Positions 1,923 through 30,009 of a DNA stretch of 64,000 nt are shown in pieces. Each line of letters begins with the position of its first letter. The first letter of the stretch is position 1. Where the stretch lies: NCBI GenBank assembly GCA_038496445.1, contig JALMLS010000143.1:1-64000 (forward strand). The letters run 5' to 3'. The notes under the pieces were generated by a model. It searched no databases and was not told the DNA's origin. It saw only the letters and a list, made by a program, of their open reading frames with translations. The position numbers were made by a program, and so were the translations under genes. This DNA comes from Trichosphaerium sp. ATCC 40318 (Eukaryota; Protista; Tubulinea).

Positions 1923-2539
1923 ACTTTGTTTAACTATTAATAACTTGAAGTTTCTTTATTTCGTTCGAGAGGATTTTGATAAATATAAAAGCTTCACTGG
2001 CACTTGATACAACTGCTGTTGTGCTTGTACAAAACTAATAATGAACCTTCAAAGAATGTAAGAGAATTTCATTTAATGCTTTTTAACAACTTGTCATTAT
2101 TAATCAAGACTCACAGAATATGACAATACACTTCACTGTACTTTTGGGGTAATATAGCTAACAGCCTTCGTACTTTCGTGTCCTATAATAATTGTTGAAA
2201 TAAAAGGGAACTCCCTTTGAGGTTGCAATAAAAATACAAAGACATGGCAACGAACCTTAACAGCACATCAACAAGTTACATTAAAAAATATCTGTACAAC
2301 CAGTTACCTTTGTCCGAGAAAAATGAGCAACCTAGTGTGGTATTTGGTAAAAGTACTAAACATCTAGTACCCCTTGTTAAAGCTCGGTTAGTAGTAAAAA
2401 CAGCATCTCACTTTCAGATTCTTACTTTTTGCTGTTTAGAAAATTCGCATCATATTCAACCACGTTTTTTTGGTTAGCCAAGCTGGAGTTGTATTTATTC
2501 ATCATACTATTGTTTTAATAGTAGAGATGCACAGTGAAC

Positions 2540-4300
2540 GTGTCCCACGTCATCATACTTGAAATCCCGCAAATACTTCGTGTGAAATCATTCATGGGGT
2601 TTCTGTTCAGCCGCAATACTTCGTTGAACTGAAGGCTGAAAATGTGTGACGACAACTTTCTTCGTTCCAATGGGATGAAGGATTTCTCCAGGGAGTTCCT
2701 TCGTATTTAGAGCGCTCATATCTGCATTGCAAATGCAAGCAGTATAGCGCAAAAAAACACTTTGGGGCACGCCACGCTATCACCTCTTTTGCTTTTGGTG
2801 CCCAGATTATGGTGTTTGCTTCGCGTGTGAACAAAACTGAGCTAACATTGCTCTAGATTACCGCCCTCGCCATCAACAGGAAGGAATTATGATGCATATT
2901 TATAGTGAGAAGGCACCTACGAGCACTTTCATGAAGCAGTTTAAAAACAAGGTTGGTTGCAACAAGTTTTTTATTATTAAGCGATATGTTTTATGGTCTC
3001 AGCAATACTTTGAGCCGAGCTCTTATCACTATACGCTTCCACCACAAGTAGTAACTCATTTATGTTTGTTTTACCTTTGCGAAGTTTAATATCTGCTTTT
3101 TTTCTGGAAATAATCATGTATGTCACTTTACATCGCATTTTCTCCAAGTCTACGATAACTACCCAACCTTTTGCATACTCCACTTTTTTAGAAACAATAA
3201 ATCTACCCATATTAGATCCAAAATGCCAATCTGGAGGTATAACAAATCCTAATATTTTTGAAGAGTCAGCGACACAAAAGAAACCGCAAAGAAAAGAATG
3301 AAGTTTGCCTTACCATCAATTTCAGCAACAATTGGTTCTACAAGATGCACGTGTTTATCTGCTGGTCTTAGAGAATCAAAGCCTATCTATACCGTATTAA
3401 TAAACAAACAACAATGATAGGCTTGTAGTTGGTAACAGAATAAACGCTGATATGATTGTTCTGACTTGAGGAACTTTAAGAGTTTGTGGAATAACAACCG
3501 TCGCAGCAATCACATCAGCGCTAATTTAATTACCCACGTCAGGCCCTACCAACTACCAAAAGAGTATCGCACAGTGCCGGGATCTGCTAAATCGCCTAAC
3601 TTGCAATTGGTCGCATTATATAAACCTAAACATTAATAAGAAAATTGAACTTGTAATATCACTCACGTGCCAATAAGAGGATAACGTGAAATGCCAAGGC
3701 GTTCTGTGCCATCTGAAACATCGTCTTCGAATAACCATCCTAGTTTGACGTCAAAAAAAGGCAACCAACTCCAGTGCATGACTATTTTTTTTTTCAATAA
3801 GTGTCTAATTGGCACCTTGGCATAGTATGTGGTGGAATTCGCGATCATCTAAGGCTTTTGACACCACTAGATCCAAAGACCACTCCAAATCGTCCATATC
3901 TCTTGGTGGCTTCTTTATATTCGCAATTCTATCGTTTTGAGGTATTTTGGACTCCAAGTTGTACGCTTGGTTAATTTTCTCCATTACCCACTGTTTCCAT
4001 TCCCAGTCCCCAATGAGTGATGTTTTACGCGCATCAGACGGATTTAGTAGTGTTGTAGCGTATACCGATTTACAAACTCTAAACGCATCGCCAGATCCAG
4101 AACCTGACGCTCGGTGTTACGAAAAACGTCTTTAAAATTAACGGAAACGAAGTTGGTACCAATAAACACTGAATTAGACACTTCAAGAGTTGGACATCGC
4201 TCTATTCTATCAAATGCGAGTGAAACTTGCATCTCTACTCTGCATTTATCGGCAGCACTTAACTTAACATTCAACTACCACGCTGATTACGTGAAGTGTG
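2540..4300 (-). pseudogene. Disrupted coding-like region, possibly mobile/viral relic with CE-clan cysteine-protease-like motifs
   Basis: Protein-like fragments in shifting frames with stops and without clean introns; contains YHCCLFI..*IGFDSL...SFLCGFFC. Confidence 0.3.
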
Positions 4301-4481
4301 CTTGAATTTACTAGATTTGTCTTTTGCATTTTTATTCTGCAATCATAGCAACTCCTCTTCACAAAAAAAGTACGTTAATCACCACTCGTCGTTTGATTAG
4401 TTAGTTTCTTTCACAAACCCTAAAACAAGCTTTTATGCTTCCAGTTTTGATTCACAATCTTATAATTTGCTTAGTACCATC

Positions 4482-5103
4482 ATGGCAACTTGGTCAACAG
4501 GTCTATTTCACGTTTTCGCTGATTTGGAAGTCTTGTACGTACCCCAAAGAGTCTCATTTAGTTGTTTTAAACACTCGTATGGTTTGTTGCACGAGAGTGT
4601 GAGTTCTGTGCGCTTTCTCAAAACGACGAAGTTCTCTGTTTGTTTATTTGCATTTTCCGTCGCTTATATAGTTTTTTTAAGCCTATACGGTGCTCTAGCC
4701 CCACAATGCTTGGCAGTTGAAAACAAAATGAAAATCGAAAAACCGGAACATGGTGAGGGAAATGGTCCCCTAGGTGCGTAGATCAACGGTATTATCATTT
4801 TACAACGCTAACGATGTAAAACTAGGAACTGGTATGGTACAAGACGATATGTCCCGTCTTATCTCTTTTGTCCTTTGCTACTGCATTCCTTGCGTTCGTG
4901 TATGCTGGAGAGGATCTGTTCGCGAAAAATACGGTATTGGCGGAAGTTTTGTTGGTGATCTTGTTTCAGCGCTTGTTTGCTGGCAAATGAGCATCTGCCA
5001 AGAGGCTCGTGAGATCAAAGCACGCAACGGTGGACTCAAAGCTGCCCGCGCTTCAAACCTACCTGAATTGACACAACCTTTAATGATGACTGATGACAAC
5101 TAA
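4482..5103 (+). CDS. PLAC8 (Cys-rich) family protein, 3 exons
   Basis: N-terminal WSTGLF, then RGSVREKYGIGGSFVGDL..ALVCWQMSICQEAREIK, the PLAC8 signature. Confidence 0.85.
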
Positions 5104-5613
5104 ACGTTCACATTTTTTTTTATCTTTGAAGATACTGTATAATTTATTACCCATCGGTCTTAATAAAACCATATTAAACCAACTTCTCCCTTTCTTCGAA
5201 TAGCATAAAATAACCTCACACGGCGCACGATGTAGAATACAAAAATAAGTTGCAGAGAAACTCATTATAGTCAAGTGCTGGATGTTACCAGCGTAGGAGT
5301 TATCATTATTTGTACAAAAGGGCTCCAATGTCAGAATTGACGTGCAATAACGCAATGTTGTTTTAGTGCTTCACTCAAAATACTTCTCCGTTACAAGCCC
5401 TTGTCTTCTACATTTGTTGTCATTGGTGGATGCATTAACTCGTCTATCGAAATCGCGTATGTAAGACAGCATGTCACAATCTAATATGAGGTTTATTGCA
5501 ATAATCACTGTTTTCACAACAAAATACATTGTACTACCCCGTATTATCTATTGGCACGTGGCTTTGCGCACTTACTGTAGTTTTCTCAACAAGAAAATGA
5601 TGTACACGTGACG

Positions 5614-6396
5614 TTATTGTTCTGATTTTCTCCAAAAAGACAAGGAAGCAAGATGTGATGATCGGTCTGGAAATATTGTTAAGCTTCTAAGCACGTGTTC
5701 GTAACCGTTCACAACGGTTATATAGTCATCTTCTGCTTTTATCAAAGCAATACCCGCTCTATTAGCTGCTTTGACTTCCAACAAATAGCATCTAGGTCCC
5801 AGTTGAGGCCGTTCAACGAATGTCGTCACATAACCGTTTGTGTTAGGGTATATACTGTGTCCATCTTCGTAATACTTGTGAACTTCGCCAGCCATACTCT
5901 CAGGACCAAATGTGTCATATGTACACTTCCAGGTGCCAACGAGAATATCCAATAGCCTGATTACCTTAAATCTAAACAGTTCAGATGTCCCATACTCGTT
6001 GTACAACCGTGACAAGTCTGTAGGATCGATTGGTACACAAAGTGCCGTTAGTAATTGTAAAGATTTGAGGGATTGCAGTAGATCTAGTTGTATGGGCTCG
6101 TAGAAGTCGCAGTATGATATATCAAGAGATGTCACGCTTGTTTTCCACAGATAAGTGCAAAGTACTTTAAAATCTATTGGTTCAGGTTCAGGAGCTATGT
6201 ACACGCGTTCTACATGTTTACATTGCTTAAGAAGTATCAATGCACTGTGACTGACGATAATCTCGTTTAGAGTTTCTAAGACACGCATTGAAGCTTTTTT
6301 AAGCGCTTTACATGTAACTTGAATTGCCAGGTTCATTTCCACGTCTAAAGCTTTGACAATCTCATATTGAACATCGAAGGGCATCATAGAGAGCAT
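5614..6396 (-). CDS. Intronless F-box protein with short LRR-like segment
   Basis: 260-aa ORF; LSMMPFDVQYEIVKALD..LAIQVTCKALK is F-box-like; VTSLDISYC and LKSLQLL are LRR-like. Confidence 0.7.
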   Translation of the reverse strand: MLSMMPFDVQYEIVKALDVEMNLAIQVTCKALKKASMRVLETLNEIIVSHSALILLKQCKHVERVYIAPEPEPIDFKVLCTYLWKTSVTSLDISYCDFYEPIQLDLLQSLKSLQLLTALCVPIDPTDLSRLYNEYGTSELFRFKVIRLLDILVGTWKCTYDTFGPESMAGEVHKYYEDGHSIYPNTNGYVTTFVERPQLGPRCYLLEVKAANRAGIALIKAEDDYITVVNGYEHVLRSLTIFPDRSSHLASLSFWRKSEQ

Positions 6397-6419
6397 GTTG
6401 AGCGTTAGTCGTTACTTCA

Positions 6420-7950
6420 CGTTAAAATGACTTGTTATGACTTACCTGTTGGCGTTTTTACAATCCTGCAGAACCACGCCCGCACATAACTCCATCAATA
6501 ACTTGAGTTACATAAGCGTAATAATCTTGCTCTTCATCTCGTATGGGTCAACACGTGATATCGAAACATACTCGGTTTCAAAAACTAAAAACTGTCACAA
6601 TGCAAAGGCCTAACTGGTTGATATGACGCTGTATGCTTGATCGATTGTTGATAGATTGTGGTGATTGCAAAAAATGGCAAAAAGACGCGGTTTTACCGTT
6701 TCTTCCACTCGGACTAGTACGCTCCACTAATCGAATGATCACTCAATCATCCACAACGAACGATACCAGATCTGGCGGCGTAGCGTGTGGTGCTTGCTAC
6801 GACGTCTGACTTGGTACAAGGACGGTTTCTTTGGCGGAGCTAGCTTGCCTTCCAAGCGTAGTCTCTTTCTAAGAGCCTTCCTTTTTGCGTATATATTGGG
6901 GTTTTTCTTGTGAGTCGCGGGCGCTGCAGTCTCCAAAGATTCTAAGAAGACTATCAGCTGGCTTAGAAGCACACCTGACGCTCTCTTCATTAAGTCATCA
7001 AATGACATTAAACCCTCATCAATTGCCTGGAGTAAGCGGTAGAGAAGACTTAATATCAGTTGTACACTGAAGAGGAAGAGATTGAAAGATTGCTCTAAGG
7101 AGAGTACTGGAACTATACCAAACATATACATAATACGTTTTTTATTGTGTCTATAAATGTTGCCAAATTTGTTTATAAACCCTTAAAAAAGCAATCGAAA
7201 TAAATTGTGGGATACACTTCACAGAAATATCCATTTTAATTACTCAATTATGGATAATGCACATTTACAAACGCTTGTAAACCCTTGTGGTTGTTACTTT
7301 AGGGTGTGAGAACCGTTTTGACGATTTTTTGGATCGCAACATGTGCTTCTAAACGAGTACTACGTCCGATTTTATATCGAATGTAATTTTAGTTGCTCCA
7401 CCGCGTTACACCGGTGCTAGCAAACATTTGGTGCCTTCGTTCTACAATACGAAAAGAAGCTATGGTGGATATTCGGTGAAATGAGTTGCAAAGAAAAGTA
7501 GAACGACTATACAAATTTGTGAAACGAACTGGTTTTTTCTTCCATTTTTAGGTTAGCAGGTGTCGTTTCGTTCACAGTCGCTTTAAAACTGCTTTTGTCA
7601 AGATCTCTTGGTAGATAATTTGTAACGGTTAAATAATATCTTGACCACAACATACTTGCAGTCGTAGTATCAACACGAGTAGACACAAATAAATGGTACT
7701 AGAATTCAAAATGTCGAATTCAGCCAAGAATAATTATGAAAGCCGCTAAAAGGTCGATTCAGAGTCTCCGCGCGTAGTTGTATGGAATAAAGCATTTTAT
7801 CGTAGTTTGATAGAGTTTCTTAAAATATGTCTAAAAGCCTCCTAACTATCACGAGATGCATTTAATATATAGTTGCAGGTCATAGTGATTACTTTAAAGG
7901 CGCTATGAGGGTTCTACTCTTTTAAATATTCAAAAAAAGTAATGTATTTT
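6420..7950 (-). mobile_element. Decayed coding-like region, possibly hAT-type transposase relic
   Basis: Broken frames without clean introns; LLAP/VTRWSN near 7390-7425 resembles the hAT TRWxS motif. No TIRs or TSD identified. Confidence 0.2.
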
Positions 7951-7991
7951 ACGCGGCGCCACTAGTTGCGATTCTAATTCTGTTTATTTTG

Positions 7992-10900
7992 TTACTTTTT
8001 TTTTTCTTCAGCAGTTGGTTCACCACGTAATTTCTCGTACACTGGTTGCTTGGCTTGTTTTTTAACAAGTGTAATTACAGGCCAATGAGGGTGACCATCG
8101 AATGAAAATTTTGCAGTCAATGTATCATCCTTCAGTTGCTTGTTATGTGGAAGCTTAGACAATCCGGTGTAGTTCGTGTGAGCGACCTAAAGCAACCAGT
8201 AAGCTGTTGAACAATGACAGAAACTCAAAAGAAAAAGAGTTTAACACTCTTAAAGACATACCAACTTGACACGCTTGATGGTGTTCTTGAGTGCGTCTGG
8301 TGTATCAGCATGTGAATTCAACTCGTTGAATCCCTCTAAAGCGAGTTTGTAAGAATCCAATGAACCTCTGAAGACGTCTTGAAGCTGAAGCAGAAGTTAG
8401 AAAAAGTGAATAGAGCAATGTTTTAAAAAGTTACCTTAAATGACTTAAAATTGGTCCCTTGTTGCTTGAACTTGTGCCAAGCCTCAGAAGGAGGATGAGG
8501 AAGCGTATAGAATGCTGAGAAGCGATGATAAAAATTCATTTGAGGAGAACCAAACTTAAACTAAAGGAGCTAAGTGAGTCTTGAGTTTTGATTTAAAATG
8601 ATGTTACCTCTGGAATGAAAATCTTATCGTTCATCATGAGTACTGCAATATGCTTTAAAAAAAATGCTTAGAAGGTAAAGAATAATAAATATATGTTAAC
8701 TTACTCTTAGTACACCTCTACAGAGGTTTTGGTATGCGAGGATATACTTATGAAGGTAATTGAAAGGAAGTGGTTGCTTGACAATGCGTTCCTTTTGTCT
8801 TATGGTAAGTGTCTTCTTGCGCTTGCCTATTGATAGAGTCAACACGAAAATAGGCTTTTATTATATGTGTAATTACTGGTGACCGATAGAGGGAGGTCAT
8901 GGACGGACAACGTACCTTTGTTGCCTTTTTTTCCTTTTTGATTTTTTCTTCCTTTTTGAGGTTGACTTTTTGGTGGTTGTTTACCACCCATTGGTGGCTT
9001 CACCCAACCGTTTGTGTTGCCTACAAAAGTCAGTTTTAATTTCTAAAACATTCTCCGAAAGCACAAATACGTACGCAAAAGGTTATGCCTCAATACATGT
9101 TCAAAACTGTTTGACCTTCTCAAATATAAAGTATCCATGTACCTAATTTTTGATAAGTTTGAGGTTTTTCTTCTCGCTTAAAAGAGAGTCATACCAGTAG
9201 ATCATAAAGTATTCATCTGGTCTGTAGAGTTGTAACTCAAATCCCAATTGAAGGTAACGAATCATTGATACGTATAATAGATCCATGTAAAGAGAAAGAA
9301 AGTATCGTGGGTAATCATAAGGGAACTAAAAGATTTCGAAATGAGTTATTTGATTACAACCATGTTTTTAAATATTGTACCGAATCTGCGCTAGAAAGAC
9401 CACATAGTGCTGTATCAACTTGATCACTCTAATAAAAAGTAAATAAAAACCTGGCTCATGCAATCGGAGAGGCAATACATCGCAGGGGTTTTATGATTTC
9501 AAGAAAAAAAGGGGAATGCATTTGGTGTCTTTTCTGGATTGTTGGGTTTTTTTGTACCTCTGTTATCCAGTGCATCCAGTAGTCAAATTCCTTACTTAAG
9601 CGACGCCTTTGTTGGGCTTTGTTCAATGAAAATACTTGATACTGGCGAAGAACAACCTTTGAAAAAGAAAAAAGTCAGCCTTTTTATGTATTTTAGAAAG
9701 TCGCAAAAAATTGAATACGAACCCTTCCAGCAGTCTCAATTGATAAGTTAGTATCAATATCTTTCTTTTGGCCAAATGTACGGCTTGGTACAGCAAAGAA
9801 TTTTGTAGCCATGTCCCTTGTAAGCTCCATTGGTGACTCTTTTCCGAAAATCAGTAAATCTTCTTTATCAGGTACTCTCTTAAAGATGCTATGCTACAAT
9901 AGTGTAAGAAACGCATAAAACATTGCGATAGACTATCATGACAAAAACAAAAACAAAAAAGTCAAGAAATTTCACCGCGCAAGAAAAAGTTCTTTGAGGC
10001 AAGCTAAACATGTCTTTCTTTCTTCCTTTGTTATTAGCGTAATTTTTGCTACGCACCACAAGTGTGATACGAATAATAGCGCTAGAAGCATTATCCATAA
10101 GCTCCCAGATGAAAAATCGTAAAGTGAATAGATTGTTATATGCTGTTATATCACAAAGCTTCATAAAATTACGGAGAACATTTGTAAGGTGTGGCACTGC
10201 TTCTAAAAATGTCCACGGTGTAATTGGCTTCAATGGAGAATTTGCATAGCGTTTACCCATATCACTCCTAAAGACATCTGGAACCTAACATAGAATTGTT
10301 AATAACACGTGATATTACAAGCACAATTAATAGCTTGTTACTATGTTGTGTCCGTTGTGTGTCCACAAAGTAAACACATTACCAAACATATGTGTTAAAT
10401 GTATTGACACCAATTTTTAGAGTAGGGCAGACGTACCTTTAGCAGTTCTTGAGATTGTTTCAACTTGTTAATTTGAACAACACAACCCAAAAATGTTCTT
10501 TTTGCTGTAGTGAATTCACGAGCTTCTAGTTGAACCCAAGCTTTTTGGTAAGACTATCAATAAATTAAGCATAACAGAAACACGTGTAAAAAAACCATAA
10601 TTCTCAAAAGAAAACCAAATGTGACAGTTGCGATTCAAGTTGATGTGTCAATCTTCACTGAATAAAATCTCACCTTGTGAAACATTAATCGCGTTATCAG
10701 TGCTTGTCTGATTTTTTCCTCTTCGTCTGCTTCACATTTCAGCTTCATTTCTATTAAATATTAGCATAACAATGAAAAAATTTGAAAACCTTTATTTTTT
10801 AGCTTTGTGAGCAAATCATCGCATTTCTCGAACGTTTCGTTCATGTCTATATCAGGAATAGCAATACCAGATATAACAGCAGAAAAATCATCTACCTACA

Positions 10901-11870: not shown

Positions 11871-13358
11871 ATGTCTAGAAGGAGTGGAAAGAAACCAAAC
11901 AAGAGAGGAGGCAATAAACCTAATAACAAGAAAAAAGGCCGCGGTGGGCGGAATAATCCAAAGGGGAGCGCATCTCGCCAATTGACAATCGAACAGAAAT
12001 TATCCAAATTCTACACAACTGAGAAAGGTTACATTACGCCACAGACGCACTAAAATACTCAGTGAATTACTAGGCGTTGACGATGAAACGAATCCACTTC
12101 GTATAACATTACCGGCAGATAATTTCCCAGCAGATTGCGTTCTACGGCATGAAGACGATGAAGAAACAGGTACTAACATACTTTTACTCAAGTGTATTTT
12201 CACAAAACCGAAAACGATTGAAAACTGTGTTTAACGTGTATTCACGCTCTTGAATCCGTTTTAATCGACCGTAGAGGGCGAAGGAGGCGAAATTAAAGAA
12301 GTTCAACAACCATCTGCCATAGATTGGTACTCACTCAGTACAAAGCACTGGGAGGTATGTTATCGTATATTTACATGCGTATTATACTAATAAAATGAAG
12401 GATCAATCATCAGACATCAATGGTATGCTTGGAGGATATGACAACGTTTCAGAAATTGTGCGTTTTCTTCTGTTCAAAAAACTCTATTTTGCACATGCAC
12501 TGATAGTGCAAATAGGATGCCAATGGATCTATTGCATTTGCTAGGTTGTTTTTACAAGGTAAAGGAGTCACAAAGATTAAAAGAGGACGTACAATTGGTA
12601 AGACAACATGCGAAGCAAAGTTTTTTGTTTTTTTTTTTGGTTGCTTATTAAATGGTTGTCTACTAGATTGTGGTGCTGGTATTGGTCGTGTTGCAAAATT
12701 GGTATTATCAAAACTCGGATTTGAGCATCTGGACCTACTAGAACAGAACCAAACGTTCTTGGATTATGCTAAAAACACACATTTAAAGGGAATTAAATGC
12801 ATTGATAACTTCATTTGTGATCCTCTTCAGGTAATTTTTTTAATTCGAATCCTTTGTTAGTACCACGGCGCATATACTCGGGTTCTTGCTAAGTAGAAGT
12901 ACTACTATGCAACTGATAGAGAACGTTGGCATTTTTTGTGATTTTACACAACTTTTCTTATTTCTTTCTTACTTTTTTTTTTTCTCCAGACAGCTAAATT
13001 AGAAGAAAAGTCTTACGACCTTATTTGGATACAATGGGTTATTATATACCTTACAGATAGAGATTTAATATCATTTTTAAAAATGTGCAAAACAGCTCTT
13101 TCTGACACTGGTACGAAGAAAAAACAGTCTGCTTTCTTACAACTTTTTGTTTATATTTTTTTTCTAGGAATCATTATACTCAAAGATAACGTCCATAGAA
13201 GCCATTTTATTCTTGATACTCAAGATGCTTCTGTAACACGTTCCGATCGCCATTTAAAACTAATTTTTGAGGCTGCTGGATTAAGGCTTGTAAAAGAGAA
13301 GCTACAAACAGATTTTCCAAAAGAATTATTGCTTGTTCGTATGTTTGCATTACAATAA
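11871..13358 (+). CDS. NTMT1: N-terminal Xaa-Pro-Lys methyltransferase (NTMT1/Tae1) with basic N-terminal extension
   Basis: GMLGGY, DCGAGIGRV (SAM motif I), YDLIWIQWVIIYLTD, LKDN, DASVTRSD, FPKELLLVRMFAL. Confidence 0.92.
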
Positions 13359-13565: not shown

Positions 13566-16500
13566 TTAGTTGAAAGAATCTAGGAATGTGATCCCTACAA
13601 GGAACGCTGTTCTGAGATAGTGGTCCCAGTGCAAATTTTGTTTGCGTTCAACGAAATTGGGTATATTAACTATATCCTGAGCCTTATCCGTCACTGTTGT
13701 TCTTTTGTATTTACGCGCAAGGTATCTGGCATCCATAGTACTAGCTAATTAAAACCGGTTAATCAACCTCAAAAGCCAAAAAAAAGATAAAAAGATAGTA
13801 CAATAAACAAAAGTATAAAGGTTCGCCCATTTTTCGTTTGATCTTAATGATTTTAGTAATATATCTGCAGCTTCATCTTCACCGTCATCTTTACGATATC
13901 TATTTGTGATAATACGTATCTTATTAGGTGGGCAAAAACCTGAAAACTTGTTTAACCAAGCAATCAATTCCTTCGTTGATGTCATTTGAATGACCTGCAG
14001 AAAGCAATGGTTACAAATATGATTCGCTGAGAGAAAGAAGATTGGATTTAGTTATGTGCTAGTACCTTTGTTTTAATGACGTTTTCTTCAACTTTATCAG
14101 CCAGTATCTGGTTTTCTGTTGACATGTTATCATCAACCCACAGAATAAGACACGCTGCCTCACGCCAACTCACATCAAATGACATGTCTGCATTGCTACT
14201 GGTGCGAGTATAGTAAACAAGGTAACGAGGAAGTACCTAAACGATCAAACCAAGTTAGGCTAACAAAAAAGAGAAAGTTGAATAAAAGAACATGCTTGGT
14301 TCTTTGAGAATACTACAATCTCATCAGCATCTGGTTTTTCGTCCATCTGACAAGGAAAGAATATTGTAGCATTTGCTTTGTTTTTCACAACAGCATAGTG
14401 AGAATCATACCCGGGCTAACAATTCTGTTATCACATGTATTTTTAGAACGGAAGGTTTGACATGCCTTGCATCCTTTACCAAGAAGACTCTTCGGATCTG
14501 CTGGATTTGGATCTTCAGTGACTGGATAAGGCTTTCCCATCATGACCCAAGAAATCAACATACACTTCTCTTTTGGTGACTTTTCCATTTCAGCGTATAT
14601 GGACCCTTTATAAAAAATCACGTGATTAGCAAGACGTCAATCAATCACGTAAACATACCATAAGAAGGGTACTGAGTGAAATAAATGCCTTTGCCTTTGT
14701 TGAAAAGTTAGCGGTTGTGATGCAAATCACGCGACCAATGAGTACCGAAATAACCAGGATCAGTTTGTTGCTTGAGCTCATGTGGCTCTAAAAAATTATT
14801 GGTGGCAATCTGGTAGCTCACGTCCTTGATAAATATAATTTAGCAGCGACAAAGATGGTTAATAACAATGTACTTCAGATGTTCCATGAAAACCAGCTAT
14901 GAGGTTTATGCCTTCATTTCCGGATATACGCATAACATAATTCTTAAGGTGCGATTTTACCCTTCAAATAATTAGCAACAATAACATGGCGCAAAAAGAA
15001 CAACACTTTGGTGACACGTTTCAGCGTTTTTTATGATTTGTTAATAACCGTACCACCGTTTGTGTGGCGTCATATCTTTCATAGAGTGTAAGTAATTGAC
15101 AACAATACTAAACATACCTTCATTTTCTATGTCTCCCTTAGTATCTCTTTTGATCGTCTTTTCCACAAAGGAATCGTATGACTCTTTGAATTTGCCTTCA
15201 AGTTTCGGATTATCAAAAAATACAATCTTAGACACATTAAAGTAAGAGTTCTTGTTTGTGCCAACAAAGTTATAGAACATATTTCTTGCTCTAATATACT
15301 CTATTTGACGTTCCTATTGATTAAAAAAATGCTTGTAAGAAAAATCAAATGTCACGTGCTCTGATAGAGGTTCTTAACGTACAGGAATAGTCTCATCGTT
15401 CAAAAGTGTTGTGAATTTCAATAAACCTTTCTTGTTCCATTCTCCTTTGTTGTAAAAAGACTGACCAGAAACAGAACCCCATAAGTTCATGCGAGTATCT
15501 GTAATTATTGGATATCCTCTCTCTAAATCGTTTTGGTTCACAATTAATCCTGTTTTTATAAAGTCAATAGCAACTTTGTAAGGAAAGAGTTTTAGTTGTC
15601 TCACCAGTTTTGGTACACTTGTACAGGCTTTCTTCTACTGGGACAAAGCATCCAGTTTGTACAGCAGCAGGACATTGTAAAGTTACTGTAGCTTCAATCT
15701 GGTTTAGCCAGTTATCCATACATTCCTAGATGTTTTGTTAAAAAGACAAAGATTAGCTTGAAAACAACATACTCTCCATAAGAAAGGAACAATCCCACGA
15801 ACAACTACCTTTAGTGTAGCCCCTTCAAAATACAATACAATCATGTTGCCGTAGAAGTCTTTTAATATCACTGAATTACAAAAAAGCTTGTATTTCGTAT
15901 CGTGATAGCCTACAACAACATAAGAGGCTGTAAAAACAAAAACGGTAACTCACATCTTAATTGTATCTGTAAGTCATTAAATGATTGTATAGAGAGGTAC
16001 TCGGATGATATAATAAACGCCATGTATGACAACTCTGATTGTACTTGTTCCTGTCGGAAAGAGAGCATTAGTTGAAGCGGTATGTCATAATTTGATGTAC
16101 GTAAGGAATGACTTCAGTGAGTGGTATTGTATGCAATGTTGCTTGTACTTCATCATCAACAATTCTTGGATCACTTCTAAACTCGTATGCTTTGGTAGTT
16201 TTTGTCATTACACAGTATTTGCCGTTCCTCTTGACATCTTCACCTTTTTCGCTCTTTGCTTGCTGGCCTTCATTGATCTTATATACATAACAACCCTGGG
16301 TTTCAGACACAGGAGGGATGTAGAGCATTTCAGCAGTTGGCCGTAAAGACATAATAATATAGCCCTTGCACCCGTATTGTTTCTAATGTTTAAGTGAGTA
16401 TTGAGGGCAGTATTTCATTGGTGCTAACGAACCTCCTCTGCTTGATTTAGCTTGACACAAAACTTTAAACTTACAAGAACGTTCATAACTTCTTCAGCTT

Positions 16501-19500
16501 GCTTGTTTGTTAAAGAACAAGCAACTGTAAGTCTTTTAAGTGCTTCTTCTTCTGTGAGTATAGGTGTATTAGATCTTATCCCATCGTCGTTTATTAATCG
16601 TTTTAGATGATCTACAGGACAAACAAAAGCGCCCATAGCTTTTGATACAAATTGCTGGTTAGTGCATATGATACCAGAAAACTAAAGTGATGTATTAGTG
16701 GTGGACCTATTCGTCAAGATTTTTATGTACACTATCAAGCATTATTTCTCCACAGTCATGTAAGTTAGTCAGATTAGCCGCAACTTCTACTGGAGCCATT
16801 CTAATGTATCTATCGTCTGAGTTTATTTTAAGACATATATCAGATCTAAACAGACAGAGTCAGAGATTTTCTTGGAAAATATTGTGAAGATGGCATACAA
16901 TTTCATGATTCCAGTTGTAGTGTCCTGTAGCTCGCTGTTGAAAAGATGATGCAAATTGAAGGTTAAACAACGATATAGCGCTACTTGTTTTTTAATAACT
17001 TTTCTAACATCTTGAACGTTACCAGCTTAAAAAAAAGGAGTGTTAGAGAAATGTTTGGTTTTCAAAAGGGGTACTGTGCAGGTTGTTAAACACTGAACTT
17101 TGATTTGAACCAAAAGTTTGAATAAAAACGTAAGTACGTCAAAAACACGTGATTTCTTTCGAAATACAACGTGTGTTCTGCAAAATGTTTGACTCTAAAA
17201 AAACGGTTGCCAGGCCAACAAGCGTGGTTTTGAGTGGCGATAAACATTGTTTGTATGTACATGTGTCTTGTTTACGCCATCGCCACGTTGATGATGATAT
17301 ATTCTGGAAAGATGATGCGAATACAATCTTAATATATCCGTCGTAGTATTTTTCGAGTACAGCTTGTAGTGTTTTACCGATAGTTGTCCTATTACCACCA
17401 ATAACATCTACTTTTGTACAAACAACGATGATTCTAGAATTATGACCTTGTACGAATACCTTCCTGAGAAGTTGTAGCCAAAAAATCAAATGTTCTGTTT
17501 GCTGTGATAGACGTAAAGATACATCAACCTAAGATAAAAATGGTACAGTCAGTTGTAACACGCAGTCAATTAATGGGTAAGCCGATAAGAGAAAATAAGA
17601 AACTTCAAGTTAGTATAGAAAACCCACGCACTGCTATGAGGTAGATGCACATTTGTTTTGAAAAAAAGTAGTTGTGAACAGGTATATACTCAGGCTTTCC
17701 AGAAAAGTCTATTACATTAATCTGAGTACCATCAAGCCTTTAAAAGATACAGATTAGTTGAACTGTAAACCCAGTCGAGATTGCTTACTTCCAGGTGGAT
17801 GTCTCAAAACCAATTGTAGATTCAGGTAACTTTCTTCTAATTCTCCAAAATCTGCTTGTTAACTTATTGACCAGGACACTCTTTCCTAGTGGCGCCAAAC
17901 AAGTTAATATTTATGTAAAGATACAGACATTGTACCTGAGCCGGCGTGACCAAGTACTAGTAGCTTCACCGGGGATTGTGAGTTAATTTCATACTCGACA
18001 CCTAATTCTTGTCCAACATCAAGCCTTTCATGCTTTCTATTGTACATGCATTCCTTTCTACAAAGTGCTAACGATTCAAAAGATTCCAAGTCAACGGGAA
18101 CAACCTTTGCTCGTATTGTCCTGCCAATAATGGTTGCTAAAACAACATTAAAGTCAATTATTTCCTTCAAAAAAGAAACGCACAAAAAAAAAGAAAAAAA
18201 GAGGAAAGGTACCTCGGAATAATGATATTCGAGCCGACACAGCACGAACAATACAAACGCGCTTAATATTCTGCCATTCCGGATGTTTCATAAGCTTTAC
18301 TATTTCAGCAAATACCCATTCTTGTTCCCAAATCTGCAAAATTATAATGTTGTACTTCTTTGCGATTTCATTGTTCCTTGCCATATCTATCATATAGTTG
18401 CTTGCAGTTACAACATCAGCGTTAAAAAGATAAACGCTATTAAGGACTTCAAACTTCATGGCGTTATCAGTTATAACCAAAACTTTAGCTCCTTCTAAAG
18501 GCAGCTCATCATATTTTCTTTCAGGCATTGGAATTCCTTTAAAATAACCAGTGCTCATATCAATCAGACCTCTGCCACTGCCCAAGCTTTTCTCGGGTAG
18601 AATTGATTTGCCATCCATCCTCAAATACGTATGCAAACCAGTCCATTGAATAATTTTCAAGAGTATAACCTTAAGGGTACAAAAGAGTCAATATTTCGTT
18701 TTTTTTTGAAAATCAACTAACGTACCTCAAAGGGTACGTCATCATCCTCAAAGTACATCATATTATGATGTTGGGCAACCTTAAAAGCTTCATCATGTGA
18801 TACTACTCTTTTTTCACTGCCTTGAAAACTTGTAATACCAACAAGAAACTTCTACAAAAAGAAGAAATTAAAAAGTGCAAGTAATGAAGTTGATTTTTCT
18901 GGTTTATTAGGAGCAACAGAGGACAAGTAAAGCTCTTTGTTAGTAAATTTTATCTTATTTTGTGTTTATGATTTACCAATATTAATATTGGTCGCACGTG
19001 CTCATTCACGTGAAATATTTGACAAATTCAAAAAAAAACACAAAAGCAAATATGTGTCGTTTTTTAGAGTCCTTGAACGCGTACGGAGCATGGATAAGCT
19101 TCTATTCCATCTTGACTTAAACTTCTTTGCAATGCTGCAAGGCCTGTTTCTATCTTTTTTTTCACTTCTTCAAACGTGTGACGGTGATTTACATCAAAGC
19201 AATATATAAACCCACAATAACCAAACTTTGCGTCGAAATATGAAATGGAATTTTTTAATTTAAAAGTAACTTCTGTACCCTTGTAGATGACTTTTGAAGG
19301 TATCTGTTCACTGTTAGAGCGTACTTTAATGGTTTAAAGGTATCAACGCACTTTTTCACTGTTGTCTATGCATAAACAAGCTTGTAACGTGTTAGAATAT
19401 AAAAATATAGCCGCGTAATGTTCCTTACATGGTTCTTTGGCGTTGTTATCATTATACACAATATTCAGCGATAATTTAACGCTACTATAGAATCTGATTA

Positions 19501-19520
19501 CGTTTGAGTCTTCCATTTAT
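13566..19520 (-). CDS. Roco-family protein: degenerate Ras-like domain + Roc GTPase + COR + PARP-like ADP-ribosyltransferase + receiver-like domain (5' end uncertain)
   Basis: Roc: KLLVLGHAGS|GKS, STIGF, VIDFSGKPEY, CTKVD; COR-like HDCGEI; ART: AGFHGTSE, DPGYF|GKGIYFTQYPSY, DADEIVVF..Q|VLPRYLVYY; receiver-like LILWVDDN...IRIITNRYR; upstream GFIYCFDV..RHTFEEV and RVVSHDEAFKVAQHHNMMYFE. Confidence 0.75.
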
Positions 19521-20164: not shown

Positions 20165-23100
20165 ATGAAGCTATTTGTCTTCTGTTGTATTGTAGCAAGC
20201 GCAATGGCTTTTAATCCTGACGCTGGCTTCATACCTTCGTATACTACGAATGGGATAGCTACAGGTACCTTTCACTTCATCAAACACTATTAAGAACTTA
20301 GTAATTTTCAAGCTACATCTCAATTAAACCCAACTGTTCCTCCAAAGAACGTACTTGATGGAAACATCGATACAGGTATTGTAAAACGACTCCTATGTTA
20401 TGTCAATATAAGAAACACTTAGATTGGATCAGTGCTGCGTGTTTACCAGTAGGATTCGTTGTCAGACCCGACATAAATTCATTGATTGGCGCGTGTGAGA
20501 AGGGACAGGCACGTTCCCATTTTATTCGAAATATTACAAGAAAGTTCCACTCGGGAAGACTTACCAGCTTTGTATAGTGTTCTTCGACTGATCAATCTGC
20601 CAACCTGACAGCGATTACTACTGGAGACCTTGGTTCTAAAGGAACTCAAATAACAGTTGTTAATAGTGTCGCTCAGTTTTCAGTACTTTTCAACAAACCT
20701 ACAAATGTAAATGACTTTGGAGTCAGAGGTGGCGTTATGTTTTTCGCTTACTGTTGACTCAGACACTTTAGGCGTTTTCCCAAGCACTGTGTATGCGTAT
20801 GCTATTACTTCGGATGGAGAGAGTGTCTTACTAGGACAGTATACTCAAGCTCAAGATCACGCGTTTCAGAAAAATACACCAATTATAAACAACGTAAAGA
20901 GTTTGCTGATAAATTCTTCGGCATCTTTCAGTCTTAATCAAATAGCAATCACGAACCAACAATGTTATGACCAGATAGTACGCGGTTGTACAGGATACCA
21001 CTGAACGTATTAATTTCAACTAGACAGTAGACTTGGGGTCATCTAAACGAATTGGGCGTTTATTTCTTAGAGCATACAGTCTAGCTTCTTCGGAGATTGA
21101 AGTGTTGCTAGGAGATACTCAAGATGACCTTCATAAAGTTATGTCAGTACTACCTTCCGCGCAACCGGAGCTAGATTACGTTCTAGTAAGTTTACCATCC
21201 TTTTCGATAGCACGTGTTTTAATCTGCGTTAGCCGTCTATTGAGAATTCAAGATACATTGCTTTGAAACACATCGTTACAAAGGACTATGCGAAAGTATC
21301 AACACAGGTTATCGATGCTTACGATGAGCATGGCCCTTATGGTCCTCCAAGGAAACCTTTATTTAACCCCAACACCTTCAATGCGTTAATAGGGGTCAAC
21401 GGTATGACTTTGTATCTCTAAATTGGTAATCACAATTTAAGGTATTTACGGATGGGGAACAGGATTTAGCTCGGCTATTTTAAAGAAAAACACTTCTGGT
21501 CCTCTTCTCTATAATCAAGCTGTTTCGAAAGCCAGGAATTATCATAACCTACTTTGGGATGTTCTTACACCTAATCATATACCAGATTATAAAAAAATGT
21601 CAACAGGTAACGGCACAGAATCGAAATCTTGGTTGAATTGGGACGAAGAATATGGTGCTTGGAAAGTAAGTTGTTTTTCTTCTTTTTTTCTTTGTTTTTT
21701 AATGTACTGAAAGAGTGCTGGTATATCTGTGGATGCTTCAATTTCTTTTGCGAATCAAGGTGCCACTGCTGTGGATAAATGGAATGATCCATATCAGGAC
21801 GCCTACAATTATGGTGCGTGAATTTTTAGAGAAAGCTGTATTAACTCTGCATAAAGGAAAAGCCTATGCCACTTGGTTTGGTCCTAATGCAGTTGGTAAA
21901 GGAAAGAATTTGGTAAAACGAATAGAAGGTAACTATGGTATAGCAGAGTAATTTAGTAACCCTGTTAGTCGGCAATGAGCCATGGAGATACCCGGCTGAT
22001 TTTTATTCGACTGTTCTTACGTACTAAAGATGATACTCTACATACTTATTCACATTTGTATAGAGGAATGGCAAAAGGCGCAAAAGATGCCAATACAAAT
22101 ATGCAAGTAATACCTGGTGCTTTACAAGCAACAACTAAAGATACAGATCCAACAACGGTAAGCAACATATACAGCAAGATTAGGTTGATTATTGTTAGGG
22201 TGGTAGTTATGTAGGAGGCTGTATTACAGAAAAGAATGCGCAGTATTTAGATGGGCTAAATATACATGCATACTCTCATTATAGTAACGCGAGTAATACG
22301 CTTGTTTCAACATACCCTGAAGACCCGTAAGCTCTGAACTATTGTTCCTATTTTTTTCTAACGAATCAACAGACGTTCCAAAGTAAATACTATACGCAAT
22401 ATGCTGCAGTTCCGTGACATCAACTTCCCAGGCAAACCAGTTTTTTTAACTGAATGGGGGTAGCGAGCGAATAATGATTTCCTGCTTTATTCTTACTATT
22501 CTACAGATGGGACACAGATGGCGTTGGTGAGCCATGTCATCCTGACGTTCATCATGCACCATGTGTTTCCGAACTGGCTGGATCCAACTATGGATGTACG
22601 TAAGCATTGTGACTAACTTTGAGCCTTATCGTTGTTCTAGTGCGTGCGCTACTTATTGCTGCACGTGAAGGAATTTCAAAGACGTATTGGTACTTTTATG
22701 CTAACTTACCAAACTGTGCTGGTCTATTTTGTAGAAGCGGTTTAACAGGATCTAAAAACGTTCACTACGCCAAAAAAATGATATTCTATAATTTGCAGGT
22801 AATACTATCATTTTTCTTTAATTTATGGATTTTCTCATAAGGCAATATCCAAATTAATGGGTCCATGCACTTTATTGATGTCATCCAAGAAGATACCAGC
22901 GCATACGTATATCTACTAGCTGATGAACAACGTACTCAAATAATATCAAGAGAAACACGTGTTGAATACCTTTTTTCAATAGAGCAACCTGCTGGACTTA
23001 TTGCATGGCTTCCAATCAAGGGAGACTTACCTACAACCCGCAACATAACAGTCAACGTTCCTAACTTAACCGTCAAAGAGAATTATGGTTGGAGGTTTAC

Positions 23101-27051: not shown

Positions 27052-27957
27052 ATGGCATCAAAACGTGACGTAACATATTTTTGTGCCGTTTTTTAAATTA
27101 TTCCAAAACTAAGCACTTAATTACAGAAAGAACAAAGTGAATCGACTTGGCATCATATATTACACCTTCCAGTTGAATTACAGCTTGATATTACAGACAT
27201 AGACTTTGAAATTTATTTAAAATGGCCATTGTTATCTAAGAGCGCTGCCGTAGCAACAAGGTATGATTTAGCGCTAAAGAAATATGGTAAATGGATTAAA
27301 CAAAGAAAATGCCAAGAAAACGATTCAAAGTGGAGACCTGTTACCCAAAAGAGCTACAGACATGGTAGAAGGCACGGTAAGTGTATGACATGGCATAAAA
27401 ACGGACAGATCAAGGCACAAAGCGTGTGGGTTGAAGGAACACAAAACGGTGAAAGTAAAACATGGCATGCTAATGGACAACTTCATATTCAGTCTCAGTA
27501 CATCAATGGTAAGTGTGAAGGTGAGTATAAAGAATGGAGTAAGATAGGTGTATTGATGGAGCATTGTCACTATTCTAAAGGTAGACGTGAAGGAGAGTAC
27601 AAGAGCTGGTTTAATGACAGTAGAATCTCTGAACATTGTTACTACGTCCATGGTAAACTAGAAGGGGAATACAAAGAATGGTATAATTCTGGTAATTTGT
27701 GCCAGAGGTCTGAGTATGTTGGTGGTAAGCTTGAAGGAGTGTACAGGTTTTATTACGAGAATGGTCAGTTAAGGGAGGAAAGTAATTTTATAAATGGTAA
27801 GCGTGAAGGAGAGTATAAACGTTGGTATTATAGCAGTCAATTGAGAGAACATTGTCATTTTGTTGATGATAAACGACAAGGACATTACAGATTTTGGTTA
27901 GACAGTGGCCAGTTGTTTCAAGAATGTCAGTATGTTGATGGCATAGAGCAAATGTAA
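27052..27957 (+). CDS. F-box + MORN-variant (YwqK-like) repeat protein, one short 5' intron (27070-27126)
   Basis: In-frame ILHLPVELQLDI..IDFEIYLKWPLLSK upstream of the listed ORF; about eight 24-aa repeats of type GxxEGEYKxWxxxGxLxExxxY; MASKRD|KEQ joined by a GT-AG intron. Confidence 0.8.
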
Positions 27958-28489: not shown

Positions 28490-29358
28490 TCACATTGAGG
28501 ATCTAAATATCTCAAGTGCTCCTGTTAACGCCATAATAGCCTTATCATCTCCTATCGCCCTTCTACGCAAGTGGATAGTATGTACACCTGAAATTGCCTT
28601 CAAACCTTCAGCTGTTACTTTTGTAAATGATACATCGATTTCATATACACCTGCCAATGCCTTAATGCCCTCATCTGTTACTGATGTACAACCATTCAAG
28701 TAGATGGTGTGTACACCCGCCAGCGCCTTAACGCCTTCGTCTGTTATTGATTTACAGCCATTCAAGTAGATGGTGTGTACGCCTGCCAGTGCTTTAATGC
28801 CTTCATCCGTTATTGATTTGCAGTAGTGCAAGCTAATAGTATGTACACCTGAAATGCCTTCAAACCTTCATCTGTTACATCTGACCAAGATAACTTTATT
28901 TCATGTACACCTGCCAGTGCTTTTATACCCTTATCTGTAATGTTTATACCGGAAAAACGAATAGTATGCACACCTGCCAATGCCGCAACACCATCATCTG
29001 TTATTGATTTACCACCAATCAGGTAGATTGTGCGTACGCCTGCTAGTAGCTGCAAAAGGCTGTTTTTTATTGCAAACCTGAGTCTAAAGAACGTATTGTC
29101 TATTGAAATGATAGTGTTTTGGAGAAGTGGACTACCAGAAAGGATATGAAATTCTCTTTCACTAGTAATCGCAATAAGACCATATCCAACGTGGTTGTGA
29201 ACAATATCTCGCAACAAGTGGCACGTTTGGGCTGAACGGAGGGTATAGCTTCCTTGTTTTAAGATATGTACTATTATTTCAACTGGTAGTGCAGTGAGAT
29301 CAAACACGTGCTGATTGATACTTGGTGTGGGTATTTTTTCCATGTTATGTTTAAACAT
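28490..29358 (-). pseudogene. Intronless F-box + LRR (LAGVHTI repeat) gene with a 1-nt frameshift
   Basis: LTALPVEIIVHIL F-box; repeats ITDEGIKALAGVHTIxL; frame change near 28855 where aaggcatttcagg lacks one A relative to the sister repeat aaggcaatttcagg near 28590. Confidence 0.75.
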
Positions 29359-30009
29359 TTTTGTATGCTAGTTTTTCGTCAGTTTGAGAACGTATTAAAG
29401 CAAGTAGCCGATTACTTCGTACTTTTAGAGCTAAATTAAATAGGAGCCTAATGGACTGAAAAAAAAGAGCGTGGCTTCTAAAACTCAAACCAGGATGAGA
29501 CTGGTATGAGAGATTGTGTTAAAATTTTATGTTTCATAGAATTTTCTTTAAGCTGTTCGTGTCACGTGTACATTTTTTCAAAAACCGGAAAGTAGTCAGG
29601 TTCAACCATAACACGTCAAGCGCTAGGAGCGAACGTTTCTCTGATACAATGGATAACTAATGGGTAAACAGCATGTGTCAAGGAATCCTCAAAAATATTA
29701 AGTACAGGCCAATTACACAAATTGTTAAAAAAAGAGCTTGTGCCTCGTTTTATTATCATGTACCGACAAATAGTGTTGCCGATACAAATTCATACATGTC
29801 AGCTAGTTAAGTTGTTGTAGGTTAACAGGCTTGGTCGACTAAAACAAGCATGTACTTCCAAAAAAAGAGATATAATTTTCTACAAATTCAAGAATCTCTG
29901 ATTGACAATTGCACAAAGTGCAATGTATTGTAACAAAAAAATGGGGTATGTTCATTTAAAACGCTGCAATCGGTCTCTATAATTATAGTTATGGTAAAAA
30001 CGAGAATGC

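Follow-up and report, generated by a model that had tools for sequence, protein, structure and literature searches.

The 64,000-nucleotide stretch analyzed here (the window; positions 1 to 64,000 of contig JALMLS010000143.1, our C19, in assembly GCA_038496445.1) comes from the protist Trichosphaerium sp. ATCC 40318, and carries on its minus strand a split gene that, as read from the genomic DNA, comprises about 24 short exons, with its predicted start codon (ATG) at 19516 and its stop codon at 13569–13571. Its predicted product combines a Roc GTPase domain and a COR region with a PARP-type ADP-ribosyltransferase (ART) domain and a C-terminal tail with a receiver-like fold. The exon chain was assembled from stop-to-stop frames, a three-frame reading and a search for frame-keeping splice junctions, and an open, frame-keeping splice path runs the whole way from the ATG to the stop. 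The introns are mostly 44–70 nucleotides long, with two longer ones of about 230–240 nucleotides; by reading, all are of the GT-AG type save for two GC-AG introns (14416–14465 and about 14240–14295), both with a GCATGT donor, the GC donors being positioned after 14466 and after about 14296. The window has a G+C content of about 36%, and its contig is part of a 70.3-Mb assembly of 642 contigs. A first-pass annotation of this DNA had noted Roc motifs, a COR-like region, an H-Y-E triad and a WVDD tail on one strand between 13566 and 18100: all of these are present, in that order, in colinear minus-strand exons. The exons chain upstream of 18100 to the ATG at 19516, and the interval thus misses the first 1.4 kb of the gene.

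Since the single exons (11–83 residues) are too short for Pfam models, the domain calls rest on homologues: the window was searched exon by exon, and domain identities were taken from colinear homologues and from profiles of paralogous exons. A profile of one ART exon, built from 18 paralogs, was searched against 1.84 billion representative proteins and found 32. The homologues include P0003, a protein of 1131 amino acids whose open reading frame (ORF) is uninterrupted and lies on a contig of 3.9 kb that was assembled out of publicly available sequencing reads; P0014, a gene model of 1065 amino acids from Mastigamoeba balamuthi (EukProt); P0008, a protein of 860 amino acids encoded on a 14.5-kb environmental contig from ENA (L047; locus 2430–9994); and P0028, a close relative from assembly GCA_009712145.1. 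P0003 and P0014 span the entire region from Roc to the tail and can be aligned with successive window exons from G1 through the tail; these two and P0008 each carry PF00644 matches. On L047 the ORFs follow the order ankyrin repeats, Roc, COR–PARP (P0008) and a 100-amino-acid ORF, and the four probably represent one split gene. That colinear homologues of full length consist of one ORF each, with both Roc and PARP matched above the Pfam threshold, bears out the earlier proposal that Roc, COR, the PARP-like ART and the receiver-like tail belong to one gene. When P0003 or the tail of a further homologue, P0027, served as the query, word-index searches of protein sequences returned no match beyond the queries themselves.

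On the GTPase side, the window gene displays the Roc motifs GHAGSG/KS at G1 (split by an intron at the slash), DFSG at G3 and TKVD at G4. In the colinear homologues the Roc domain is recovered by PF08477 (1.5e-12 in P0003; 3.5e-9 in an L047 ORF), and a profile of the switch II (G3) exon from 14 paralogs matches in the PDB almost only the LRRK2 Roc domain (best E 0.012). For the COR region we turned to the full-length structural model of P0003, of which only the COR and tail parts were used because its Roc and ART parts are unreliable. Residues 326–680 of this model (predicted local distance difference test, pLDDT, mostly 65–95) resemble the COR region of the Chlorobium tepidum Roco protein (Foldseek against 3dpt, E 1.3e-7; against 3dpu, Z 14.8 with 279 residues aligned), with LRRK1 and LRRK2 as the next matches, and the COR exons of the window are colinear with this region of P0003. 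The Pfam COR-A and COR-B models gave no match above cut-off among 14 family members, the best being 6e-4 in one member. Taken together, motifs, profiles and the homologue's predicted COR fold identify, in the window gene, a Roc GTPase domain that is directly followed by COR.

The ART identity is anchored by several sequence and structure comparisons. Seven of the 14 family members match PF00644 above cut-off (best 6.4e-14) and an eighth falls just below it; no single window exon reaches this model, nor does a six-frame search of the window contig. A family profile finds the PARP4 catalytic domain with E 1.8e-9, and also PARP2 and PARP12, and it aligns the triad motifs of the window, spread over ART exons 2, 4 and 6, with those of PARP4: FHGT with HGS, GIYF with GIYF and DEIVVF with DEFVVY. 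The model of the homologue P0027 (pLDDT 74) matches PARP10 with Z 15.1 and a root-mean-square deviation (rmsd) of 2.9 A over 176 residues (Foldseek E 3.9e-8), and about 300 PARP chains are matched at E <0.001; in this homologue, the ART fold suspected in the first-pass annotation is supported. Single-exon profiles run against the PDB, three for ART exons and one for a tail exon, retrieved either nothing or spurious designed repeat proteins. Motif alignment and the homologue's modeled fold thus establish a predicted PARP-type ART with a complete H-Y-E triad at the place held by the kinase in LRRK2.

The tail that follows the ART domain is predicted to adopt the five-stranded (beta-alpha)5 fold typified by CheY (residues 1006–1131 of the P0003 model). 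The P0003 tail matches some 50 response-regulator receivers with Z 12–14.3 and an rmsd of about 2 A over 110–120 residues, and the P0027 tail matches receivers with Z 7–8; likewise, the clusters nearest to the tail in ESM features are response regulators (score 0.87). Strand 3 ends in an invariant T-N (IITN or VITN) that places an Asn at the position of the phospho-acceptor Asp, and Cys/Gly after strand 4 and Asn after strand 5 replace the conserved Thr/Ser and Lys. With Asn at the acceptor position, the tail is predicted to be incapable of being phosphorylated. PF00072 gave no match at E up to 1 in 14 family members, nor in the window exons. Of the receiver-like domain originally suggested, the fold is therefore retained and the phospho-acceptor is not: by sequence and model, the tail is a pseudo-receiver, i.e., a dead receiver. 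We rejected a TIR or macro identity for this domain, as the structural matches of the P0003 tail are almost all receivers.

The gene belongs to a large family in its own genome. A search with ART exon 5 finds 53 matching places, and with a COR exon as the query these loci are recovered again, on the same strand and some 1.8 kb upstream; after allowing for near-identical haplotigs, the family has about 40–50 members, around ten of which lie on contig C3, several of them inside 130 kb in tandem clusters. The exon order from G1 to the last exon is the same in the paralogs (tblastx and tblastn against eight paralogs over 10 kb each and nine further ones over 3 kb each), with the alignments taking in 12–17 of roughly 45 copies. 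Because this order recurs in 12–17 aligned paralogous loci, the exon series is not a product of chance. The triad is invariant in the aligned paralogs (His in 17/17, Tyr in 12/12, Glu in 13/13), the Roc motifs are kept as GHGGSG (G1), DFAGQ (G3) and SKLD (G4), and the last exon stops 8–11 codons past a conserved V.VTN motif in all 12 paralogs checked. At the level of sequence alignment, then, there is one conserved reading unit made up of Roc–COR, a PARP domain whose triad is intact, and the pseudo-receiver.

A further view of conservation comes from a copy of the window locus, 98% identical with its flank included, at the start of contig C266. Between the two, exons differ by 0.9% and non-exon sequence by 2.3%, with 7 synonymous changes and 4 codons showing an amino-acid change, a weak but consistent signal of purifying selection. 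This second copy (L045; C266:1–8000) lacks one C in a CCC run of a COR exon, corresponding to window position 15642, which is either a frameshift in the haplotype or an assembly error. On contig C199 (L040; 70500–80499 of the contig, at about 3500–5800 of the extracted piece) there is a compact, rearranged fragment closely related to the window gene and similar to it in all three frames. Its Roc exons are missing, its ART segment runs in the opposite orientation to COR and tail, and it looks like a decayed copy.

In contrast to this constant core, the part in front of Roc varies. Several paralogs have MORN repeats, then a small alpha/beta domain, then Roc (PF02493, 3e-43 and 5e-28), whereas the window copy, together with L038 and L043, forms a subfamily without MORN repeats. 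By eye, the first three exons of the window gene give the impression of a small GTPase that is without the P-loop, DxxG and NKxD motifs; neither the Pfam scan of the exons nor a phmmer search of exon N2 against the PDB supports this Ras-like region. The exon immediately before Roc (18618–18211) has response-regulatory domain proteins as its nearest ESM Atlas clusters (score 0.92) and no Pfam match, and a receiver-like identity for this pre-Roc domain is at present only a lead. The N-terminal module also differs between organisms, as ankyrin repeats are found at L047, a locus of another eukaryote, and MORN repeats or the Ras-like region in the genome of the window. Upstream of one paralog on contig C25 (L043, 8628–9521, minus strand) we observed an open frame of 298 codons that consists of proline-rich repeats of the PTNAPVP type.

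Table 1. Exons and domain segments of the Roco–ART gene in the window, in order of transcription
Feature	Position	Strand	Basis and remarks
Exon N1, start of degenerate Ras-like region	19352..19516	-	Open from ATG 19516-19514 to GTGCGT donor, then 48-nt intron; start codon predicted
Exon N2, putative Ras-like core without DxxG motif	19085..19303	-	By eye; weak colinear match in paralog L038 (GFIYCFDVN vs GFIILFQSN)
Exon N3, putative Ras-like C-terminal half, ITSF in place of NKxD	18726..18851	-	Read from sequence; no Pfam match
Pre-Roc alpha/beta domain, receiver-like (lead only)	18211..18618	-	Colinear with pre-Roc exons of L038, L043, L039
Linker; Roc G1, first half (KLLVLGHAGSG, within 18020-17937)	17937..18140	-	Paralogs: KLLVVGHGGSG
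Second half of Roc G1 (KS) and switch I region (STIGF)	17791..17883	-	Frame-keeping GT-AG junctions; conserved in paralogs
Roc G3 / switch II exon (VIDFSGKPEY...H.YFF)	17632..17736	-	14-paralog exon profile matches LRRK2 Roc; window exon itself weak against Pfam Roc (E 0.2)
Roc G4 exon (CTKVD; within 17528-17343) to G5 region	17262..17528	-	Paralogs GSKLD; P0014 aligns; 3' boundary 17262 or 17277
Exon with Roc end and COR start	16900..17025	-	Predicted; best-scoring open splice path between G4 and COR exons
COR region, seven to eight exons	15383..16845	-	Paralogs are colinear here, as is P0003 (402-490 and 687-784)
COR exons	16845-16731, 16681-16433, 16382-about 16290, 16050-15955, 15909-15773, 15725-15606, 15573-15383	-	
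ART exon 1, helix and first strand (KIVFFDNPKLE)	15114..15313	-	18-paralog exon profile finds 32 proteins
ART exon 2, triad His (GFHGTSE)	14874..14961	-	65% identical to P0003 808-836; aligned to PARP4 HGS
ART exon 3 (..FLEPHEL..TDPGYFG)	14746..14824	-	Colinear with P0028, P0003
ART exon 4, triad Tyr (KGIYFTQYPSY)	14659..14694	-	Aligned to PARP4 GIYF
ART exon 5 (CMLISWVMMGKPYP), then GC-AG intron	14466..14605	-	53 matches in own genome
ART exon 6, triad Glu (GYDSHY...DEIVVFSKNQ), then GC-AG intron	14296..14415	-	Aligned to PARP4 DEFVVY
Last ART strand (LPRYLVYY), then tail strand 1 and helix 1 (ILWVDDN)	about 14066..14236	-	Paralog alignment; equals P0027 model residues 331-385
Tail strands 2-4 (IRIITN ending strand 3, then DG.DEAA)	13803..13994	-	Aligned to P0027, P0003, P0014 tails
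Last exon, helix 4, strand 5 TTVTD, helix 5, stop codon	13569..13744	-	Stop shared by 12/12 paralogs checked

The gene is flanked by a convergent plus-strand gene that ends at about 13355 and by another plus-strand gene that starts near 20700. The former, a split gene at 12395–13355 whose 3' end faces that of the Roco gene, displays a GxGxG methyltransferase motif (LDCGAGIGRV). Elsewhere in the window, a separate plus-strand gene (27121–27954) has a 278-codon open frame of G.K.G.Y..W repeats of a MORN- or YwqK-like kind, and open frames on the minus strand at 28493–29367 contain LAGVHTI.L.GC.SITDEG repeats of the leucine-rich-repeat type.

We consider it probable that the locus is a single Roco-family gene, in which a Roc–COR switch is inferred to gate a PARP-type ART with a pseudo-receiver behind it. 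Several observations weigh against this interpretation: no single window exon exceeds a Pfam threshold (20 window pieces scanned, the best being a weak Roc match with E 0.2); six-frame genome searches with PF00644 and PF16095 (COR-A) do not report the window locus; the P0003 model is of low quality over Roc (pLDDT <50); and the start codon and several splice junctions are predicted rather than observed. Moreover, G3 (DFSGK vs DFAGQ) and tail strand 4 (YTFVY vs PILVF) of the window copy do not conform to the consensus of the family, and the C-terminal extension of this copy is longer than in the paralogs. Finally, some homologues are without the Tyr and Glu of the triad, with P0027 having H-T-Q; since P0027 and other homologues lost these residues, catalysis is not universal in the family. 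We weighed these observations against four further explanations of the locus. One of these, that two adjacent genes, Roc–COR and ART–receiver, were misread as one, appears highly improbable: although the one-gene reading is derived from genomic DNA alone and a prokaryote-style gene caller split the homologous L047 locus into four ORFs, the COR and ART exons lie just 69 nucleotides apart (15383/15313) and join in frame, P0003 and P0014 are continuous from Roc to tail, and order and spacing are the same in every paralog. The same departures from consensus, along with the existence of decayed copies such as the rearranged C199 fragment and the 1-nucleotide deletion in the COR exon of the allelic C266 copy, would fit a silent or decaying window member of an otherwise real family. 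This, too, we regard as unlikely, because the splice path is open from ATG to stop with all catalytic and nucleotide-binding motifs present, and because, when the near-identical copies are compared, divergence in exons is 2.7-fold lower than in introns, with synonymous changes in excess.

The two remaining explanations concern what the protein does rather than what the gene is. The PARP-like domain might be a non-catalytic binding or scaffold module like the pseudo-PARPs of PARP13 and TASOR, in which case signaling would proceed via the GTPase and the interaction domains. That TASOR and PARP13 are among the best structural matches, and that P0027 has replaced two of the triad residues, would be in line with this; yet the known pseudo-PARPs lost triad residues, whereas H, Y and E are invariant in all aligned paralogs and in the window copy and align to the catalytic residues of PARP4, making such a loss of activity doubtful for the window gene. 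A possibility to which we accord more weight, though still a minority share, is that the protein is an ordinary signaling or cytoskeletal regulator like the Dictyostelium Roco kinases, ADP-ribosylating a housekeeping target, and that its numbers reflect general paralog expansion. The characterized amoebozoan Roco proteins function in chemotaxis and in the cytoskeleton (PMC3128523), and both MORN and ankyrin repeats occur widely as modules that bind membranes or proteins. Against this, the number of copies (some 40–50), their tandem clusters on C3, the exchange of N-termini and the presence of decayed members together resemble what is usual for conflict families, albeit not decisively.

In terms of mechanism, we advance the following scheme for the single Roco–ART gene, in which the GTP-switched ADP-ribosylating or NAD-consuming effector suggested by the first-pass annotation is kept as a hypothesis. 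The variable N-terminal part would bind a ligand, a partner or a membrane. Roc–COR would then rearrange with the bound nucleotide, as in other Roco proteins, and thereby free or assemble the ART domain, which could transfer ADP-ribose from NAD+ onto itself or onto target proteins. The dead receiver might serve as a docking, dimerizing or autoinhibitory module. The some 40–50 copies, partly arranged in tandem and with exchanged N-termini, are best accommodated by a conflict or surveillance role. This reading, including a part in immunity, draws solely on the number of copies, their clustering, the exchange of N-termini and the decayed members, and it is the least secure step of the interpretation. 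In its most specific form, which we put forward tentatively and hold to be rather unlikely as it stands, the Roco–ART proteins would be NLR-like intracellular immune or cell-death receptors of amoeboid protists: (i) exchangeable N-termini (MORN, ankyrin or a decayed GTPase) would detect an invader; (ii) Roc–COR would assemble; and (iii) the PARP domain would ADP-ribosylate invader or host targets or drain NAD+, thereby aborting the infection.

Each part of this architecture has known counterparts from which the whole departs. As in LRRK2, LRRK1 and the Dictyostelium Roco kinases, Roc is followed by COR, with interaction modules in front and an enzymatic output behind; in contrast to them, the output is an ART with a pseudo-receiver rather than a kinase with WD40 repeats, there are no leucine-rich repeats (LRRs), and by sequence the region stays below the Pfam COR thresholds. 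Structurally, the COR region of the homologue P0003 is closest to the C. tepidum Roco protein (LRR–Roc–COR; 3dpt, 3dpu, 6hlu), which is without an enzymatic output domain and shares a sequence identity of only 10–12%. With PARP4, the tankyrases, PARP1/2 and the mono-ARTs PARP10/12/15 the family shares membership of its homologues in PF00644, the aligned H-Y-E triad and the predicted fold; unlike these, it has no helical regulatory domain, WGR, macro, WWE or zinc-finger domains and is instead fused to Roc–COR. The tail, in turn, retains the (beta-alpha)5 fold of CheY receivers, the acidic residue after strand 1 and the DG motif after strand 3, while differing from them in its Asn for Asp, its Cys/Gly and Asn for Thr/Ser and Lys, and its lack of a PF00072 match. 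The closest parallel in logic is with the bacterial AP-GTPase (Roc–COR) conflict systems, described in the passages concerned of Kaur et al. 2021 (PMC8195603) as comprising variable repeats, a Roc–COR switch and an exchangeable C-terminal effector; those systems are bacterial and, in the same passages, no PARP-type ART figures as an effector. In the open-access full-text literature we found no description of an architecture combining Roco or Roc–COR with PARP, ADP-ribosyltransferase or MORN, the nearest idea being the AP-GTPase systems, which agrees with the initial remark that the architecture is not known as a described family.

Roco proteins have been studied mostly on account of LRRK2, and how Roc–COR controls a downstream enzyme is still debated. 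Against this background, a natural family in which Roc–COR drives a different enzyme would provide an independent system for asking what Roc–COR transmits, and the PARP family would gain a member gated by a GTPase. Should the large and modular expansion of the family in Trichosphaerium reflect defense, protists would possess an innate immune receptor of a new type, one that connects the Roco proteins of eukaryotes with the AP-GTPase conflict systems of bacteria.

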